A DNA stretch of 64,000 bases from Oopsacas minuta (lineage: Eukaryota > Animalia > Porifera). Made by a program: the position numbers and the translations under genes. Below the pieces are notes generated by a model. It was not told the DNA's origin. It saw nothing but the letters and a program-made list of their open reading frames with translations, and did not search any database. Each line of letters starts with the position of its first letter. Position 1 is the first letter of the stretch. Positions 52,497-62,857 of the stretch are shown here, piece after piece. The stretch lies in contig JAKMXF010000011.1 of assembly GCA_024704765.1 (NCBI GenBank), positions 789,557 through 853,556 of the forward strand. The letters run 5' to 3'.

Positions 52497-54522
52497 TTAA
52501 GCTTTCTCATTAGGGCCAACGTTACCTTTGGAATTTAAGGTAACACCGTGAAAATCTTTAATTTGCTCCTGGAATGAAGCAGGTAGCGACCGGAAAAGAT
52601 CTTCCTTGTGTAGATTATTTGAAATGATTACAAATACGCAGAGCATTTTTAGACTGGGTTCTAGCTCGAGAACGTGTGTGTCGCTTAAATCAACAAGGTA
52701 GTCGTCACTACTACCAGTAAAGGTGTGTTCGTATTCGTTTTTATCTATGGTTTTTTCTGACGGTGAAGCTCCTCCAAACATAAATAGCTGAAAAATGTGT
52801 AAATATATATAATAAACATATTATAGTGGAGTTCGCCTATTAGCAAGTCGTATTTTGCGCTAATTGCCTTTGCTAATACTTAAACCGTTTGTGGAGTTTA
52901 CTCTGTTTTAGGCAAAGGAAAATTGCTAATAGGTGAATACCAAATTAGAATTCGACTTACTTTTGAACCAATGAGACAAGTACCAGCTCTCCGTCTAGCA
53001 CGGGGTCGTTTACCCCATGGATTCAATCTTGTCCAATGATACGTTTCTGTATTAAATATAAATAAATCGTTAAAGTGCTTGAATGAATTCTTACTGCCTC
53101 CCCCGAATATTATAATCCCATTTCTGTATTTAATAGCTGAATGACTTCTCCTTCCTTCTGGTGCTACTCCTATTGTTACGAGCTCTTCCCTAGGGAAACA
53201 ACGTTAATAATAGTAGAAGATAAATTGACTGAGATTCATGGCAAACCAAGATTGCTGCACAAAATTTGCTGTACAAAACTGCAATTAGAAAAGTAAATTC
53301 TATTATAATCAACAATAGAATATTCTAAGAGCAATACGCACGTAAAGAAAATCGTTAACTATGCTCACGGGACAATTTTTGGCTAGTTAAAAATACAATG
53401 AAACCTCGTGAATACGAATACCAACGGACGTCTTATCTGGAAAATTCGTATTTTATTGACGAGGTTCGATTGTATTAACTTACCATAGAGAAAGTTCTTT
53501 ATTATAACAATACATCGTATTATTGTATTTCCTTGTTCCGCCGAAATAATAGTCAAGATATTCCCCCCCGAAACAGAATATTTTATTACCAAACGGAGTC
53601 AGTGTATGGAAAATTAAATGAAGGTTTACTGCACACCCATTCGTGGGTAGTTTATCCCACGTGACTGTTTCCATGTCTAAAGCGAATAATTCATTAGAAT
53701 AACCCATTGTTCTCGAGTATGCACTTCTTTCGATTCCACCATGTAAATAAGCTATATTTCCTTCTGAACAGCAAGCGTGTGCATCACGTTCTAAAGGCAC
53801 GTCTCCTTTACAATGTGTGTTAAACCATATGTTACGAGTAATGTCATAGCAGAGCACAAGATGTGGGGGTCCACCCATTTGAATATTGAATCCACCTATA
53901 ATAGAGAAATTGAATAAAAATGCTTATATCTATAGAAGTTTGAAATTATACAAATGTGACCTCAGAGGGCGTCAAAGTAACCTAAATTCATCGGTTTTTT
54001 TCGAAGTAATTATCGCGGTTCCTTGAGCTTCGATATATAACAGTAGCTGACTGTAGTTATATAATTTTACACAAAATCTAACTCACCTATAATGAATATC
54101 TTATCCTTAAAAGTAACTGCAGTATGTCCAAATCTTGGATCTGTTCTAGCATCACATTGTTGATACTTCTCAGGATATTTATTATAATCGAATATGTTAT
54201 TACATATAATACTTTTGGGGTGTGGAATATACTCCCAATCACTGGAATTACTGTGTGGGTCTAAGCTTTGTATGTCCATAGTAACAAGTGGATTCGCACG
54301 CTCCATATCTGTTATAAGATGTTGTGAACAGTATCCACCGAATGAAAATATCCGTTGAGCGTAGGGCGAGTAAAGAGATGCGTGATTGACTCGACATGGG
54401 AAATTATGATATTTCGTCACAAGCCAGTGGTAGTTTTGGTTAATTTCCTCTTGGTCATTATCTTTGATTCTTAAGTCCATTCGACTTAATGCTGGAATAT
54501 GTTTAATTAAGGGAGCAAACAT
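52497..54522 (-). CDS. KLHDC3: Kelch domain-containing protein 3 (CRL2 substrate receptor), 4 exons, ~440-455 aa
   Basis: Exons 54522 (or 54480)..54087, 53895..53484, 53189..52961, 52787..52497, phase-consistent. RVNHA...FSFGGYC, PRFGHTAV, ERDAHACC, PEGRRSHSA...HFNDL, RRRAGTCLIGSKLFMFGGASP, BC-box-like PSLKMLC. Confidence 0.88.
52824..52945. mobile_element. MITE family B' copy
   Basis: TAGTGGAGTTCGCCTATTAGCAAGTCGTATTTTG ... TTGCTAATAGGTGAA in KLHDC3 intron 3. Confidence 0.65.
53920..54053. mobile_element. MITE family A copy (reverse, one end eroded)
   Basis: CGAAGTAATTATCGCGGTTCCTTGAGCTTCGATATATAAC ... CTGACTG-TA in KLHDC3 intron 1. Confidence 0.7.
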
Positions 54523-56257
54523 TATTACATATTATACACAAATTTTGCATGATTTATATGAGAATTGTATTTAATACATATACTTGGAAATATGTGCATA
54601 TTATCAAGGCTATTGACTGTATTTAATCTTTTGAATTCAGGGTAAACTCTCAAAACAAAGTTAGTCGTAGGATTTTCAAACTGTTCAACTGTAAAGACAG
54701 TTGAGAATCAATATATAGGATACACAGTGAAAAGTATGGCAACATTCCATGGACACCTGATGGTCGTTAACAATGAAAAATATTCAAAACAAGCTTGTTA
54801 CATAAGCCTAGATGTAGAGTATGGCCTCGTATTTAGGGAGACATTAATATACTTAAAGCAACCCCCAAAAAGGCAATACTCTTGTAACAGGAGTTTCATA
54901 TATACACATATGTCCAAACACGAGTTATGAATCCGAGTATTAACTAATTTGAATACTATTGTTCCAACTAATGTCTATTTTTACTGGTTTCTAATGGATC
55001 AAGATTCTGGAAATAACTCACATAAATATCTTGCAAACCTTACAAGATCTCTTTATGTATGTGTAATGTGATTCACAATTTAGTAGACATTTTGTATAAA
55101 TTTACATAATTCTGGATTGAATAAAAATATGAAAAATAGCCATAACATCAATGGATGATAAGAGAATCCATAAATTAATAACGTAGTGTATGAAATTAAC
55201 CCAGTAAGCATATTTGTATAATAATAGACCACATAAACTCATGCATTTGGGCTAGGCCACACGGTCATGTCACAGAAAAAATTAATTTTTGGTCGCCTTC
55301 TTGGGAATTTACACAAAAATGAATTCAATCAAATAATTTTAATGAATACTGAAATAATTTTAGCTATCAATTTGTGAGAATTAGGATAAGAGTACAGGTA
55401 AATAAAACTGTTCAATCTACGTAAGTCAGTTGAATTGGGGCTTGATTATTACCAAAGAACATACCGTAGAGTTGAGTGAGTAGAGGTTATGTAAATCAAA
55501 AAGTGACCGGAATGAACGAGTGAATTAACTGTAAACTATCAGTAGTAATGTGGGTCTAGAAGATAGGTTATTATAATGGTAATATACAGATATGCAACTC
55601 TGAGAGAACAGAGAAATTGGTTATGAATTAGTAACTCAAATGTATTTATACGTATAGAAATACATGCAAGTTAGCTCACGAACAAATATTAATTGATCCA
55701 AAAATTGAACTTGGGAGAAATTCATGAAATCGCCAGACGTTGAAATTGCTTTTATTGCTGTGAAAATATCACAATCAATCATTCGGTAATAGGACACAAA
55801 GCTATCGTATTTCTAACATTCCAATCAAACATTTACATAGTGGATCAGAGAACAAGAAGAAATTCCATGTGCTAGCAACAAGTTACAGACTGGAAAGAGA
55901 GAATTCTTATAGCTTATTATTAGTAATTAGACATACAATGTGAATTAAAGAATTAATTAATAATTCTCCTAAGGATCATACTTAAGATATAACTATATTA
56001 ATTAATAGCTTTTCAAAGAATAATAATTACATTTTCATTATTATCTTTAAAAGTCATAAGAAAATTGGGAGAGTTTGACGCATTTTTAGTGTAATTTCCA
56101 TTCCAGATAGAATTATTTATTTCACGAATGGTATATGTGAATAAATTTTATCAAAAAATCGTATTTTGTACGAATTTCACTTGCTAATACGCGAATTCCC
56201 AATACAAAATTGAATCTAAGTCCCTGAAAATTGCTATTAGGCGAACAGCACCGTATT

Positions 56258-57139
56258 TTAAATCACATAATTAGTCTTACCTTCAGTAGCTAACTCTTCC
56301 AGTTGATGAGCTATCTTATGCATTCTATGACGTCGTATTTTCTCTAATCGCTTCTCTTCTCTCACTCTCTCAACCATGAGATACATACGACGTTTCAATT
56401 CAATAGCTCGTTGGTATTCACTAGCGTAATGCGCGTATACATCCTTATACCCTTTACGATAATACATTTTCTCTTGTTCTAGCTGTATAGCACGATCATC
56501 TGCGTGTTTTAGATCCGTTGATACTTCTCTAAGATTAGAACGCAGCCAGTTCATTTGCATGGCATATTTCTGGCTGTACTTCATTCGTTTATGGTATAGG
56601 TCATCTTCAAGGGATCTGTTATCTCTCAAGACACTTGATAGAGCAGTACGTAGTTTAATTACAGCTTGCTGCCAGTCTTTGGAACGATCGTGTAACTATA
56701 TAGAGTAAATATTATAATCAACTTCCGTTATATAGAAGTACCCGCTTATATTGAAGTCTGGAATTGTCCAAATATGGAGCTTAGATATAATGGGAGTTGG
56801 CTGTAGATTGTCAATTTTTTGTTATATTTTGTATCCGTGTATTATTACTATATAACGTACATGCTGATTCTCAGCAATAAGATGTCCATTAATCTTCCCT
56901 ATCTCTTTAACACACTGCATTTTTTGCCTAGTCTCATCTAATAGAATGCTCTCCAACCTTTTCTGAGCTGCAGACGCTCGTTCATATAACATTAGTCCAG
57001 TCTCCCTAGACAGACGCGGTGATGTCTTATAGTACTCTACAGGAGAATATTCTTCTTCACTGACGTAATAATCTGGTATATAGTAATAGTATTGTTTGCT
57101 GCTTCGCTTCTTTTTCTTACTCTTTGTTTCGTTTGTCAT
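56258..57139 (-). CDS. Uncharacterised coiled-coil protein, 2 exons, ~238 aa
   Basis: Exons 57139..56861 and 56695..56258 joined in frame by a phase-0 GTACGT..ATAG intron that contains a MITE; Lys/Tyr-rich N-terminus then charged heptads. Confidence 0.6.
56716..56803. mobile_element. MITE family A copy (short, degenerate)
   Basis: AATCAACTTCCGTTATATAGAAGTACCCGCTTATA ... GGGAGTTGGCTG-TA. Confidence 0.7.
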
Positions 57140-57420
57140 TGAATTGGAGAATTTCTTATAATATTTGAATGTAGTATTTCTATAATTACGATACAATTTA
57201 TATAGAATTGCAATTGTGGTGGCCTGATGCAAATATCTTCTATATGTAGACAAATTATAAATGAATGAGTATCTTACGATATAATGATTTAATATCGGCG
57301 GAAGAAAAGCGAAAAATACCAGGAAATAATGTGTGTTCAATAAAATTCACAAGATTGATTAAATTCATATTTTCTATTGGGAAGAAATATACACAATTTA
57401 TGCTATAAGATCGTTATCTG

Positions 57421-58841
57421 CTAACAGATTTTCCGTCGAATACTCAACATTAGCTGTTCAATAGGATTCACATATGCGGAATTTTTCAGCTCACAATTAT
57501 CAGATTTTAGTAAAACATCAATTTCACCTCTCACTAACTCAATACGATCCTTAACAACTTGATAAGTACATTCATGTCTACGTATACTGAGTAGAAATTC
57601 TCTCTCCTCTGATTTTTCCTCGAAAAAAACGCGAATTTCTTCACCTAGTGCAATCTGCCTCGCATGGAAAAGCAATCGCATAACAATATACAAAACTTTG
57701 TACAGTTTATCTTTATTAGGCGGATTATCTTGTTTCTCCCATTGCAATAATTTCTTCAATCCATGGTTACCACAGGCATCACTTAAATATTTTCTAACAA
57801 CATCCCTGCTAAGTACATTTTTCCTTAACTCAACAAACTGGTAGTATTCGTCAATAGCATAGTGAATGCTGTTGTTATGTAAAAATAAACTTTCCACAAC
57901 TCTAGGGTCACCTGTTACCAACAACTCGCAATACCTGTACAACTCATATAGGGTAAAATCAGGTTGTTCTGAGGTTCTGTTTTTAATTGTAAGCGGGGGT
58001 GGGTGAAAAGAAAGACATTTTTCTGTATCACCAATATACACAACAAACATATCTAAATCTGAGTTTTCCCCATGCAAATTGTACCTGTGACTACCAAAGG
58101 GACAAGCTAGCATAATTCTACCATAGTCTTTAACATGTGTTGTTAATCGTTCCCATAACGCAGAGGAGGATATAGTAGAGTCTGTTTCTGAGAGTTTGAA
58201 AAATATTGGATTTTCGTAACCCATTTTTCGAGCTTCAACTTTTTGTTCATTTTCCTTACTTAATTTGTATTGTGCATCGAGTAAGTTGCATAAATTTTTA
58301 CCTACAAAGTGAGGTTTGTATAAAAATTATCTTGTGGACCCCTTGGTGTCACCCGTGGACCGCTAAGGGGTCCATGAACCCAGGTTGGGAACTACTGTTC
58401 AACCTATAAATATTCTAAATTACCAATTGCATCATTTACTGTCTCCCAATTTCTTGCTTTATTCAAAGATTTCAAGTTCTCTTTTTCATGAATCATAATA
58501 TCTTCAGTCATAGAGAAACTCAATCCATTCCTAAATCGACTAGTAAAAGTTACGACCCATTCAACTTCAAAAGTATACCACATACTGTTATTCTTTTTAA
58601 CAGCTGTTTCGGCTGGAGGGGTCATTAACCGCGCGTAGCCTTGCCAACCTTTGCTCGCGTTTACACTGAACATTATTATAACTTGACTGGTGTTAAACGC
58701 CGTTAATAAAATATCACGAGGTTGTTTTTCAGATTTCTCATGTCTGGGACAAGCCCATATTTTACTCTCCTGACATTTAATGAGGCTTTCGAAGTTGTCA
58801 CATTTCGCGATGAAATAACTAACCTGTATATTTTCTGCCAT
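57421..58841 (-). CDS. YTH-domain / RlaP-like (Pol-beta superfamily) nucleotidyltransferase fusion protein, 2 exons, 432 aa
   Basis: Exons 58841..58424 and 58301..57421; phase-1 intron G|GTAATT ... CTTTGTAG|GT restores the YTH last helix DAIGKNLCNLLD and runs in frame into GSHRYNLHGENSDLDMFVVY ... PDFTLYEL ... GDPRVVESLF ... RLL ... REFLLSIRR. Confidence 0.88.
58333..58398. mobile_element. hAT (Charlie-like) MITE remnant in the YTH-NTase intron
   Basis: GGACCCCTT ... AAGGGGTCC ... CAGGTTGGGAACTACTG resembles the right end of the 39572..39675 element. Confidence 0.55.
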
Positions 58842-59090
58842 AATAACTACAAGGGTGAATAGATCTTCCAGTTTACAAATAGTATAAACAGAATTTTAAG
58901 AAAATCCTCCTAAAGTGTCCAAATAATTAAAATTTGATGAAGAAAATAATCTCAGATATTATAATGCATAACAAATGGTAATTACTATATCCATGCATTT
59001 ACACTATAGATAGTATGTATTGTATGGAATTTCTATCTTCCACTAAACTACAGAACTGTTTCACAAAGAAATGGGAAGGGGGTATAAATT

Positions 59091-61289
59091 CTATTCTGTT
59101 TTTTCTTTCAAGTCATTTCCACTTACTCCATACTCGTTTTTACGTTTAGGATCTACACGATATATCCATCTTTGATAGAGAAAAATAATAAACACTATGT
59201 CGTCACGGAAACAGCCCAGTCTGTATAAAGTTGGCATTTTTATCACAAACGCGAATAAATCATCGATAAAAGTGTTCAGAAATTTATAAGTCATCATCCG
59301 CCATGGTAAATGCGCGACAGACTTCATCTTGTAGTTTATGAATAGTTGTGGTGTCATTGAAATGAAGCCAAATGTCAAAAGGAAACCGTATAGCATGGAT
59401 AAAACGAATGAATACCATCCTCTGTGTTCGTTGTAGAGGAGAGAGTATACACCATACGCGAATAGAAGGGGGAATAAAAACCAGGAAAGATAACGAAATG
59501 CCATTTTATCGAACTCTTTTGTCGGTGATTCAGCGTATGATGGCAATTCTTTTATTGTTATTTTAGGGATAATTCCGAGTATTCTTTGATTTGCAAATAT
59601 CCTTACTTGTACTACTTTTGTAATTTTCCATAAGTCTATTAGCAAACCTATACCTGTACCGAACAGTATAAGAAAATTAGATTCATTGTCTAGAATGTAT
59701 AGGAAGACAATTAACGACTGAATTAAATTGAGAAAAACCGCGCGAACACTGAGGCCTTCGAGACTGCGGCGACTTTTCCAGAATTGTATATCGTTTTTGA
59801 AAGCTAGGAATTCAAACACAGTGTGGACCAGGGATACGACTATAGTTATACCGAGTAGAATCGGATCAGTTTCAATCAACATTTCCTTCAGTGTATCGTC
59901 CTCTTCATCTGATTTCTCCTGGAACATCTGCATATAAGTATTCTGATTTTCTAACGCAGCGTAGAATTGGAATTTTACAAGAGAAAGCATGCCAAAAGTT
60001 AAATGCAAAGTTTGACGTTTGACAGTGGAGTTTATAGGTTGATAGTCCCGTTTAAGATTCCAATAATCGCATGGATACAAGATAGGGTAATAGTAATGTT
60101 TATGAAACTCTACGTATTTATCCAGAGGCGGTGGTAAAGCATTGATGGGCCAATGATTGAAATCATGTACAAGATATAGAGTTAAATTCTCATGCCAATG
60201 TGGAACAATTACGTCATCTTCTAAATCAGCAGGATTCTCTTGTGTTGGTTTACCGGTGATTAAATTCACTTTTTTGTTCACAGTTATTTTCCTATATTTT
60301 GTTACTTCTTTCATTTTGTAGACAAAATGTGTGGATTTTAACATCGGGTCTAAGTTTATAGGATCCTCATTAATGTATGTATTTCTGAGTAAGAAGGTGT
60401 GGATGTATAAACTGCCGTTTGAGTACAAATATGAATAATCCTTCTCTAAATCTAAGTCAATTTCCTTTTCCAAAGTTGTTCCCTCGTTTCTATACAAAAT
60501 ACCAATTTCACTCCAAATTAAGTTACGTATCGTGTCTTGTGTCCAATTTGCGGAATTTGACAAGTAAATGTATGTGTCAAACATTTCTCCATCAGTGAAT
60601 AGATTTGTTCCTGCCATGTTTTGAAGACTAGAAGCTCCAGCTTTTGGATTATTTGGTGGATTATTAGAAGTTGGTGATTTTCTAAAATAAGATGATATGA
60701 AATAGATAATTATAATATTCCATAGAATTGATTTCCAGGAGAATGCACCATTCGCCCTTCGTTGTGGTTGTTGTTGTTGTTGTTGTTGTTCTCCATTATT
60801 GTTTACTTCTCCAGTATTATTTACTTCTCCAGTATTGTTTACTTCTCCAGTATTATTTACTTCTTCAGTATTGTTTACTTCTCCAGTATTGTTTACTTCT
60901 CCACTATTGTTTACTTCTCCAGTATTATTTACTTCTCCAGTATTGTTTACTTCTTCATTATTGTTTACTTCTCCAGTATTGTTTACTTCTCCATTATTGT
61001 TTACTTCTCCAGTATTGTTTACTTCTTCATATTGTTTACTTCTCCATATTGTTTACTTCTCCAGTATTGTTTACTTCTTCATTATTGTTTACTTCTCCAT
61101 ATTGTTTACTTCTCCACTATTGTTTACTTCTCCAGTATTGTTTACTTCTCCATTATTGTTTACTTCTCCAGTATTGTTTACTTCTCCATTATTGTTTACT
61201 TCTTCAGTATTCGTATCAGCTGCTGCATTTTCACTGACAATATTTTCATTTTGAAGTTCGCTGTTTGTTGTTTCGCTTGTGTCTGTCAT
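59091..61289 (-). CDS. CLPTM1: CLPTM1 lipid scramblase; N-terminal repeat region frameshifted as assembled
   Basis: HWHENLTLYLV, YYPILYPCDYWNL, LKEMLIETDPILLGIT, FLAFKNDIQFW, MTPQLFINYKMKSVAHLPWRMMTYKFLNTFIDDLFAF, DDIVFIIFLYQRWIYRVD. Frame extends upstream through SWKSILWNIIIIYFISSYFR and polyQ into the 18-bp repeat; ATG 61289 is in the same frame overall. Confidence 0.9.
60793..61203. repeat. Coding minisatellite, 23 units (20 x 18 bp, 3 x 17 bp) encoding (G/E)EVNN(T/N/S)
   Basis: Consensus plus strand CCAGTATTGTTTACTTCT; 17-bp units at 61027, 61044 and 61097. Confidence 0.95.
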
Positions 61290-61657
61290 TTCTTACTATT
61301 CCAAAAGTTGTGTATAAATAATATTAATTTCTATAAGACACATATACCTAATTAATATAATATCAAAATTCTCAATAACTGAAGCCAATATCCTAATATA
61401 GAATAATGGAATACAACAATTTACTAGCACAATTGATAATATATTGTTTGGCTTTCAGAGATTGTAAACATTAAAATCGGAAGTTAAATTCAATTTATGG
61501 AATTGTAATCAGCTGGGGAATCCTGGCGAACAGCTGATTATTAACTGCATAAGTAGACTCACGTTAACGTCCGTATATTAAACATATAAATGTATAAAAC
61601 GCATTTAGCCAATTCAATAATAGCTAATACAACAAAATAAATATCTAACAAACTCTG

Positions 61658-62857
61658 TTATGATTCGTATGTTGTGGTAGAAGAATAACCAAGAGAAGAT
61701 ATATACGCTAATGCAATCACTTCCAATAAAGCTACCGAGCAAGCAAACAGACAATACCCAAGGTATGAATATAAATATCCACCTACAATAGGTGTTATCA
61801 TTCCTACAAAACCAATGCCGATATAATTTAAACCAAGAGCGAGACCAGTGGATGATTCAGGCACGATATTAGTCAACATTGTAGTAGATACAGCGCCAAA
61901 AAGCGCATCAGCCATTGACAGTGGTATAGATATAAGACAATACCAGATTAAACTAGGATAAATACCAATTAACAAGTACGATACAAGTTTAAGTAGAACA
62001 GAACCAAGGATAATATTGAATTCAAGAAAACGTGATGTGAAGTATGAGACACCAAATGTTAAAATTATAAATCGTATAACTGCAAGATATGTCATTAACC
62101 ACCCATACTGATGGGGTTCTAATTCAAACAAATCAATCGAGAAAATCGGTAGTAGTGAACTCCAAATCATACCAGGGACACCAGACAACAAGCATATCAT
62201 AAATATAGGAATTACACCAGGGATTGATAATACATGTCTCCATGGTGAGAGATCGAAAAGTGACGTGTTTTTAGCTGATGTTAAATGTGCGTTATCTGAT
62301 TTAACTGATGTTGGTATAAAGTATAGGATAAGAGGGATAACACTTATTGAACCTAAAGTTGCTATCCAAGCCGTGAATTGAGTTGAAAATAAGGTAATTA
62401 AGTATCCAGCTGATAGAGAACCCATTATTAATCCTAGGGTATAGAATGCAGAAAGTTTCCCAAGAGCTCCCGCGCGTGATTTCGCATCGCTTACGTCAGC
62501 GAGTACCATCTGACAGCCTTGCATTGTAGACATAAACATAGCGCATAAACGTGATATAACTATAAAATGTACCGAATCTGTGATAGCTAGGAAGAAATAA
62601 GTCAATATTGTGGAAACAAACGCGAGTAAAAGTGCCTTTTTCGCACCGTATATATCACCAAATCGACCATAAATAGGAGTACCTAGGAACTGTATAATAT
62701 TGAATAGAGTTTGTATGTAAGCGTAGCCAACTGCATCAAGTCCTAATTCCTTCACTAAATAAGGTAGTACACTAGTTTGCATGAAGAAACAGAAACTGTA
62801 GTTGAATATGAGGATGTAGATTACTACTACTAAGTTAGATGGGAGGGACGGCAGCAT
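61658..62857 (-). CDS. SLC22A18: Major facilitator superfamily transporter, SLC22A18-like
   Basis: FCFFMQTSVLPYLVKELGLDAVGYAYIQTLFNIIQFLGTPIYGRFGDIYG; 12-TM pattern; LADVS...RAGALGKL. Confidence 0.75.
   Translation of the reverse strand: MLPSLPSNLVVVIYILIFNYSFCFFMQTSVLPYLVKELGLDAVGYAYIQTLFNIIQFLGTPIYGRFGDIYGAKKALLLAFVSTILTYFFLAITDSVHFIVISRLCAMFMSTMQGCQMVLADVSDAKSRAGALGKLSAFYTLGLIMGSLSAGYLITLFSTQFTAWIATLGSISVIPLILYFIPTSVKSDNAHLTSAKNTSLFDLSPWRHVLSIPGVIPIFMICLLSGVPGMIWSSLLPIFSIDLFELEPHQYGWLMTYLAVIRFIILTFGVSYFTSRFLEFNIILGSVLLKLVSYLLIGIYPSLIWYCLISIPLSMADALFGAVSTTMLTNIVPESSTGLALGLNYIGIGFVGMITPIVGGYLYSYLGYCLFACSVALLEVIALAYISSLGYSSTTTYES

Follow-up and report, generated by a model that had tools for sequence, protein, structure and literature searches.

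A conserved eukaryotic protein that joins a YTH domain to an RlaP-type nucleotidyltransferase: a candidate YTH-steered RNA 3′-end transferase in the glass sponge Oopsacas minuta

The cage by which canonical YTH readers hold N6-methyladenosine (m6A) in RNA is formed in YTHDC1 by W377, W428 and L439, with W1360 as the second cage tryptophan (Trp) of YTHDC2. To our knowledge the YTH proteins described so far recruit other factors or, in the case of YTHDC2, use a helicase, and none is known to carry a nucleotide-adding enzyme. The DNA considered here, 64,000 nts of the Oopsacas minuta genome (GenBank assembly GCA_024704765.1, contig JAKMXF010000011.1, positions 789,557 to 853,556; "the window" below), contains a gene whose product has an N-terminal YTH domain followed by a nucleotidyltransferase of the RlaP type, a family reportedly named by Burroughs and Aravind in 2016. 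Knowledge of RlaP activity is recent and bacterial. Pseudomonas RlaP, in which three aspartates are strictly conserved, adds 1–2 nucleoside monophosphates (NMPs) to the 3′-OH of RNA and prefers damaged RNA (PMC12776372, a preprint of December 2025); the addition was shown for two Pseudomonas enzymes only. The proposed role is the restoration, before ligation, of nucleotides trimmed by nucleases (PMC12776372; PMC7824862). An RNA ligase neighbourhood (RtcB, Pnkp/Hen1, others) is a feature of some bacterial RlaP members only.

The sponge protein, YTH-RlaP, is probably an RNA 3′-end nucleotidyltransferase that is steered by its YTH domain. Its gene lies on the minus strand and has two exons (58841–58424 and 58301–57421), which together encode 432 amino acids (aa). 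Two open reading frames (ORFs) are listed there separately, 58404–58841 and 57421–58224 of the minus strand. An earlier note, made from the letters of this DNA, had proposed that they are one spliced gene, and its coordinates, intron and product length proved exact. The script-spliced frame of 1299 nts has a single stop, at its end, and none internally, and all 432 aa of its translation agree with the GenBank entry 'hypothetical protein LOD99_13472 [Oopsacas minuta]', for which the UniRef label is 'YTH domain-containing protein'. The gene model is already public in both databases. The parts of the gene, all on the minus strand, are:

58424–58841, minus strand: exon 1, with its ATG at 58841–58839, residues 1–139 and base 1 of Gly140; most of the YTH domain
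58302–58423, minus strand: 122-bp phase-1 intron (GT...AG) that contains in-frame stops
57421–58301, minus strand: exon 2, with the last two bases of Gly140, residues 141–432 and the TAG stop at 57423–57421
58279–58820, minus strand: YTH domain, residues 8–147, spanning the intron
58755–58757, minus strand: W29, counterpart of the first aromatic-cage Trp (YTHDC1 W377)
58578–58580, minus strand: W88, one residue past the third cage position and the sole Trp in the cage loop
57502–58140, minus strand: RlaP (PF10127) nucleotidyltransferase, residues 194–406, its helical C-terminal part running to 432
58051–58095, minus strand: Pol-beta catalytic core, with G209-S210 at 58095–58090, D221 at 58059–58057 and D223 at 58053–58051
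57958–57960, minus strand: D254, the third catalytic Asp, invariant in both family alignments

Both domains score well above their Pfam cut-offs (22.1 bits for YTH, PF04146; 23 bits for RlaP, PF10127), with E-values of 6e-16 and 6e-13 that are far beyond chance. Exon 1 alone gives a YTH match of 53.5 bits that covers only positions 2–99 of the 135 in the profile. On the spliced protein the match is 58.9 bits, takes in residues 8–147 and extends over profile positions 2–134/135, and because of this extension the view that the splice completes the last YTH helix holds. A profile built from 19 YTH parts of the family finds solved YTH domains in the PDB at E-values of 1e-25 to 1e-16, the best being Arabidopsis CPSF30 (1e-25), followed by YTHDC2 (1e-21) and by YTHDF1 and YTHDC1 (~1e-17). 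The AlphaFold model of the full-length protein, made with 55 sequences, has a mean predicted local distance difference test score (pLDDT) of 94.6 and a predicted template modelling score (pTM) of 0.68; confidence drops at about residues 160–180, in the linker. Its N-terminal part has the predicted alpha/beta fold of a YTH domain, and Foldseek places it with solved YTHDC1, YTHDC2, YTHDF2 and CPSF30 at probability 1.0 and target template modelling (TM) scores of 0.67–0.84, that to the YTH domain of YTHDC2 being 0.83. The N-terminal part is, then, a genuine YTH domain as the note had said, and every motif that it had listed is present in the protein.

Exon 2 finishes the YTH helix and goes on to encode a helical linker and the nucleotidyltransferase. 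The RlaP match is 49.5 bits on the spliced protein and 50.7 bits on exon 2 alone, over profile positions 11–224/249, and exon 2 also matches NTP_transf_2 (24.3 bits). Modelled on its own, the C-terminal domain reaches a pLDDT of 94.7 and a pTM of 0.91. In the model, helices up to H253–267 (domain-model numbering) come after a palm, so that a helical C-terminal domain with a terminal closing helix is predicted. Its TM scores to predicted PF10127 structures are 0.69/0.71 for YcgL of B. subtilis and 0.64/0.69 for MJ0002 of M. jannaschii. Ten residues (G209, S210, D221, D223, D254, D271, E276, K341, Y344 and R348) are invariant in 15 fusion proteins. Across 32 RlaP domains, stand-alone ones included, the GS, S220, D221, D223, D254, K341 and R348 do not vary. 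The earlier assignment of the C-terminal part to PF10127/RlaP, with intact GS, DxD and third Asp, is borne out by the Pfam scores and by these alignments. To judge from these conserved residues the domain is very probably catalytically active. We infer what it would catalyse by homology to Pseudomonas RlaP, and for an RlaP domain the addition of nucleotides to RNA 3′ ends, as the note had suggested, is the biochemically backed default (PMC12776372).

No RlaP structure was found in the copy of the PDB that was searched, with either the single sequence or the family profile. The best solved neighbours of the C-terminal domain are chains of Hailong HalB (E 5e-5, TM 0.43–0.52, 15–18% identity), followed by kanamycin and other aminoglycoside nucleotidyltransferases (TM ~0.4–0.5). 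That ranking lends something to a different reading, by which modified or foreign nucleic acid would be sensed by the YTH domain and answered by the enzyme with a free oligonucleotide signal, as in OAS, CD-NTases or HalB, rather than by extension of an RNA end. A TM of about 0.5 at 15–18% identity is, however, likeness at the level of the fold only. The YcgL and MJ0002 predictions match better (TM 0.64–0.71), the domain is an RlaP by Pfam and the RlaP members that have been tested extend RNA, and the conserved neighbours include no evident effector partner. A signal synthase of this kind is improbable.

A YTH-steered RNA-end transferase is the best reading because bacterial RlaP adds 1–2 nucleotides to the 3′-OH of RNA. 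The RlaP domain would move one or a few NMPs from nucleoside triphosphates (NTPs) onto an RNA 3′-OH, with catalysis by G209/S210 and D221/D223/D254 and two metal ions. The YTH domain, tethered by a long helix (H137–167), would supply RNA binding and the choice of substrate. That choice would probably be exercised by a pocket gripping an adenine-type base, possibly one modified at N6, and the pocket would differ from the canonical three-walled m6A cage. Inferred, too, are the RNA that serves as substrate, a dependence on modification, if any, and the cellular role, which may be repair or 3′ tailing.

The cage is the main weakness of an m6A-guided reading. The note had supposed m6A recognition by an aromatic cage, and the supposition is uncertain, the first Trp being the only cage residue that aligns cleanly. 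W29 aligns with the GIW/GVW motif of YTHDC2; it is invariant in 15 full-length fusion proteins and nearly so in the 19-sequence alignment of YTH parts. The second cage Trp of canonical readers lies in the loop before the F-x-V-x-W strand. It has no counterpart in any family member by pairwise or profile alignment, the positions concerned being gaps or unconserved. Hexactinellids, lophotrochozoans, the choanoflagellate and Spironema all keep W88, and Amoebozoa have at the neighbouring position a Leu, as do YTHDC1 and YTHDC2. The cage loop itself is short in sponges and has long insertions in lophotrochozoans: the mollusc, annelid, brachiopod and nemertean proteins have low-complexity insertions of 20–40 residues exactly in the loop of the second cage Trp (alignment columns ~125–160). 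On the sequence, m6A specificity of this YTH domain is doubtful. Modification-guided targeting stays a suggestion because the second cage Trp has no counterpart and W88 adjoins the third position. Within the RNA-end-transferase reading, the chance that m6A is the mark recognised is put at roughly a third to a half.

The state of the cage also bears on an alternative in which the transferase chemistry is the same and the YTH domain has another ligand, so that the protein would be a dedicated repair factor for transfer RNA (tRNA) or ribosomal RNA (rRNA). Candidate ligands are adenosines with a bulkier N6 group, for instance N6-threonylcarbamoyladenosine (t6A) or N6-isopentenyladenosine (i6A) at tRNA position 37, N6,N6-dimethyladenosine (m6,6A) in rRNA, or unmodified RNA as with S. 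pombe Mmi1. Nucleotides trimmed from cleaved tRNA or rRNA would be replaced before religation, as has been proposed for bacterial and phage RlaP, whose suggested task is to put back, before ligation, what 'smart' ribotoxins remove. The family-wide absence of the middle cage Trp, with the long lophotrochozoan insertions at exactly that loop, suits such a change of ligand, and retention of the family in phagotrophic protists and filter-feeding invertebrates suits a repair function. Yet W29, W88, K13 and the NKARN motif show conservation of the kind seen in m6A-binding YTH domains, and the PDB entries that the family profile matches best (CPSF30, YTHDC2, YTHDC1) are m6A binders. This alternative is on balance unlikely, with a weight that is far from negligible.

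A more specific form of the YTH-steered transferase can be offered tentatively. In an ancient 'reader-writer', the modified YTH pocket, seated on an N6-modified adenosine, would put the RlaP active site on a nearby 3′ end. The mark might be m6A in mRNA, or t6A or i6A beside a cleaved tRNA anticodon, and the outcome might be the addition of one or two untemplated nucleotides.

Several points weigh against a YTH-steered RNA-end transferase or parts of it. The m6A component may not apply because the middle cage Trp is without an aligned counterpart. The activity known is that of bacterial enzymes. With an identity of only ~25–30% to stand-alone RlaPs, the sponge domain could have another substrate and another product. 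Among solved folds the nearest, that of HalB at a TM of about 0.5, belongs to an oligodeoxyadenylate synthase. None of four syntenic loci has an RNA ligase near the gene, a negative tempered by the fact that eukaryotic gene order says little about function. The transcript evidence for splicing, given below, is a putative one: a contig from the run of a relative, whose RNA status was guessed.

The fusion is far from peculiar to O. minuta. Searched exhaustively with HMMER, 1.84 billion representatives yielded 669 matches, 29 of them at E<=1e-30; a protein was counted as a fusion member when the match ran over both domains and both Pfam families were above threshold. Full-length YTH-RlaP proteins occur in more than 25 species of Metazoa, Choanoflagellata, Amoebozoa, Hemimastigophora, Stramenopila and Dinoflagellata. 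Among molluscs they are found in Biomphalaria, Gigantopelta, Lottia, Pomacea, Mytilus, Elysia, Mizuhopecten and Pecten, and among other lophotrochozoans in the annelid Owenia, the brachiopod Lingula and the nemertean Lineus. Outside animals the choanoflagellate Salpingoeca kvevrii, the hemimastigote Spironema and the dinoflagellate Tripos have the fusion, as do the Amoebozoa Balamuthia, Arcella and Pelomyxa and, by sequence match, Flabellula, Stenamoeba, Copromyxa and Mastigamoeba. The 1025-aa protein of the stramenopile Platysulcus tardus has one YTH domain and then two RlaP domains. A word-indexed search with the family alignment, which was not exhaustive, added only further molluscs (Dreissena, Mercenaria, Batillaria, Littorina and Ylistrum) and no cnidarian, ecdysozoan or deuterostome member. 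Among the animal sequences to which a group could be assigned, the family was confined to hexactinellids and lophotrochozoans. The uniqueness that the earlier note had implied is accordingly gone, the same architecture being present in lophotrochozoans, a choanoflagellate and several protist supergroups. The domain scan and architecture search that it had called for gave scores above the cut-off for both domains and an architecture that is already catalogued in databases and uncharacterised.

All the fusion entries are labelled hypothetical, uncharacterised or 'YTH domain-containing'. No literature was found on YTH with RlaP/PF10127, or on a fusion of YTH with a nucleotidyltransferase, in a search whose coverage did not extend to the 2016 paper that named RlaP; a BioEssays 2015 survey of adenine methylation mentions YTH in passing only. 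The architecture, a reader domain joined to an RNA-end transferase, thus appears uncharacterised.

[The C-terminal domain of three proteins in an AlphaFold DB cluster, A0A210PZ06 (607 aa), A0A267DKT4 (508 aa) and D3BUU1 (520 aa), is RlaP-like and lies behind an N-terminal region of ~150–300 residues that showed no alignment with the modelled YTH domain. RlaP-type enzymes may therefore pair with other modules.]

In a maximum likelihood tree (quick search, with Shimodaira–Hasegawa-like approximate likelihood ratio test [SH-aLRT] support only) the fusion proteins split from most stand-alone RlaPs at a support of 99, with two RlaP-only rows inside. Hexactinellids and lophotrochozoans group together at 91, lophotrochozoans at 98 and hexactinellids at 100. 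The choanoflagellate and Spironema adjoin the animals, Amoebozoa form one group and the molluscs stand together; several branches are long. The tree of the fusion proteins roughly tracks species relationships. No close relative was confirmed when IMG/VR and the GTDB representative genomes were scanned for motifs of the family alignment, a weak negative because the patterns were derived from the fusion family. On these sequence comparisons YTH-RlaP is an old eukaryotic gene with mostly vertical inheritance and frequent loss. It would be neither a sponge invention nor a recent bacterial import, and the O. minuta gene an ordinary member.

The exon–intron structure can be followed in other assemblies. 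Exon 1 has its ATG, ORF and Pfam YTH match all directly visible and has orthologous exons in three assemblies of the ENA, here L001, L002 and L003. The synteny described below and a protein identity of 62–81% are the reasons for regarding these three as other glass sponges. The intron boundaries read GCA ATT G/GTAATT...TTGTAG/GT AAA AAT (slashes at the splice sites), and the split codon is GGT (Gly140) because exon 2 begins at 58301; unspliced read-through would meet in-frame stops inside the intron. In L001, L002 and L003 an intron interrupts the identical codon in the identical phase. Those introns, of 51, 132 and 67 bp, are of unrelated sequence and each has in-frame stops. Across the four genes nonsynonymous divergence (dN) is 0.12–0.29, synonymous sites being saturated, and for the closest pair the ratio of nonsynonymous to synonymous divergence (omega) comes to 0.057 over the whole gene and to 0.12 over its YTH part. 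Strong purifying selection thus acts on both domains.

A contig of 1378 nts from a run of a relative, whose RNA status was only guessed by the tool ('RNA?'), is colinear with the gene over both domains and lacks the intron. For 312 letters of the window the contig has 193, the number left when the 122-bp intron is taken away and one codon added, and a second one-codon difference falls where L001 too has an extra residue. The contig is putatively the expected spliced mRNA of an L001-like species, since genomic DNA would add 51–132 letters. The four matches to this DNA among sequencing runs are all DNA contigs of the source sample, and no RNA run covered by the search contained it. The gene of Lineus is divided into at least eight coding blocks and has no intron at the sponge site. 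The corresponding Lineus codons lie within one exon, so the sponge intron is either lineage-specific or was lost in Lineus.

These comparisons decide a further issue. Gene callers of the prokaryotic style list the two ORFs separately and most PF10127 members are bacterial or viral, so that two genes might have been merged in error, or an RlaP gene of a bacterium or phage might have been transferred recently or be a contaminant. Set against this are a conserved spliceosomal intron within the YTH domain itself, eukaryotic neighbours in conserved order (MFS, CLPTM1, then Kelch), a continuous DNA contig of even depth, and single-polypeptide orthologues in many eukaryotes, that of Lineus with its several coding blocks included. 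A tree that tracks species relationships points the same way, as does, more weakly, the lack of a close relative in the motif scans of IMG/VR and GTDB, whose patterns came from the fusion family. Artefact or foreign DNA is hardly credible, and the merged-gene, contamination and recent-transfer readings are rejected on the conserved intron, the eukaryotic synteny, the orthologues and the species-like tree.

The intron of O. minuta has a content of its own, in a stretch that looks like a dispersed miniature repeat inserted there:

58329–58399, strand not assigned: copy of a dispersed short repeat within the intron, with an assembler depth in the source DNA runs 5–8 times that of its flanks

The stretch is GC-rich and has internal inverted symmetry (GGACCCC...GGGGTCC). 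Many other contigs match this stretch only, with 5–12 differences; no second copy is present in the window at 3 mismatches or fewer. The 122-bp intron is longer than the 51-bp one of the closest relative because the repeat copy sits inside it.

The gene block of which YTH-RlaP is part occupies 54067–62857 of the minus strand. Its order, shared by the window and the three ENA assemblies, is a transporter of the major facilitator superfamily (MFS), CLPTM1, the YTH ORF, the RlaP ORF, two unnamed ORFs and Kelch. The named neighbours, conserved across the four assemblies, are:

61658–62857, minus strand: MFS transporter
59091–60617, minus strand: CLPTM1
around 54067–54522, minus strand: Kelch-repeat gene

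Directly downstream of YTH-RlaP, ORFs 56822–57340 and 56258–56629 (minus strand) have 62–87% protein identity in all three related assemblies. Neither has a Pfam match. From their conservation they may be exons of one unnamed gene.

Whatever interest there is lies in the YTH-RlaP family rather than in the O. minuta locus. An activity was assigned to RlaP only by the December 2025 preprint, and for bacterial enzymes only. A conserved YTH-RlaP suggests a direct route from recognition of a base in an RNA to chemical change at the 3′ end of that same RNA, whose purpose may be repair after nuclease damage or tailing. Were the 'reader-writer' form of the proposal true, RNA modification would be coupled directly to the repair or marking of 3′ ends, which is undescribed for any YTH protein. 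The unusual cage may also show how YTH pockets switch ligand. The family is present in molluscs, annelids and amoebae that are accessible to experiment.

Compared with known systems, the sponge protein has the fold and most signature motifs of canonical YTH readers (YTHDC1, YTHDC2, YTHDF1–3, plant CPSF30-L and Toxoplasma CPSF4), and it keeps their first cage Trp and the basic Lys that contacts RNA. It differs from them in lacking the middle cage Trp and in its cage loop, of few residues in the sponge and much enlarged in lophotrochozoan members. The partner differs too: a nucleotidyltransferase, where YTHDF proteins have a disordered effector region, YTHDC2 a helicase and CPSF30 zinc fingers.

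With bacterial and phage RlaP (PfRlaP/PaRlaP, T4 NrdC.11, YcgL and MJ0002) the C-terminal domain shares its Pfam family, PF10127. Common to both are a Pol-beta palm at the N-terminus, which carries GS, DxD and the third Asp, the helical C-terminal domain that follows it, and K341 and R348. In contrast to these enzymes, the sponge protein is eukaryotic and intron-bearing, has a YTH domain N-terminal to the enzyme through a long helix, and is without an RNA-ligase neighbour. Cid1, TUT4, TUT7 and PAPD have the Pol-beta superfamily core in common with it and would be functional analogues if the sponge enzyme tails RNA 3′ ends, but its helical domain is different. Membership of that group was considered and set aside, MTPAP-like_central scoring 18–18.8 bits against a cut-off of 27 and no PAP-associated domain being matched. 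Hailong HalB (PDB 9dbh, 9dbj), the closest solved structure to the C-terminal domain, shares 15–18% identity; the sponge protein is without a HalA-type partner, and its domain is the one that Pfam assigns to RlaP. Closest of all are the orthologues of Lottia (V4AUQ2), Lingula (XP_013409525), Lineus (XP_064635683) and Balamuthia (KAL6069548), which are 30–44% identical to it along almost their whole length. Orthologues share with the sponge protein the two-domain layout and the invariant residues, the metazoan members forming one clade with it, and depart from it in loop insertions, in C-terminal extensions and, in the case of Platysulcus, in a second RlaP domain.

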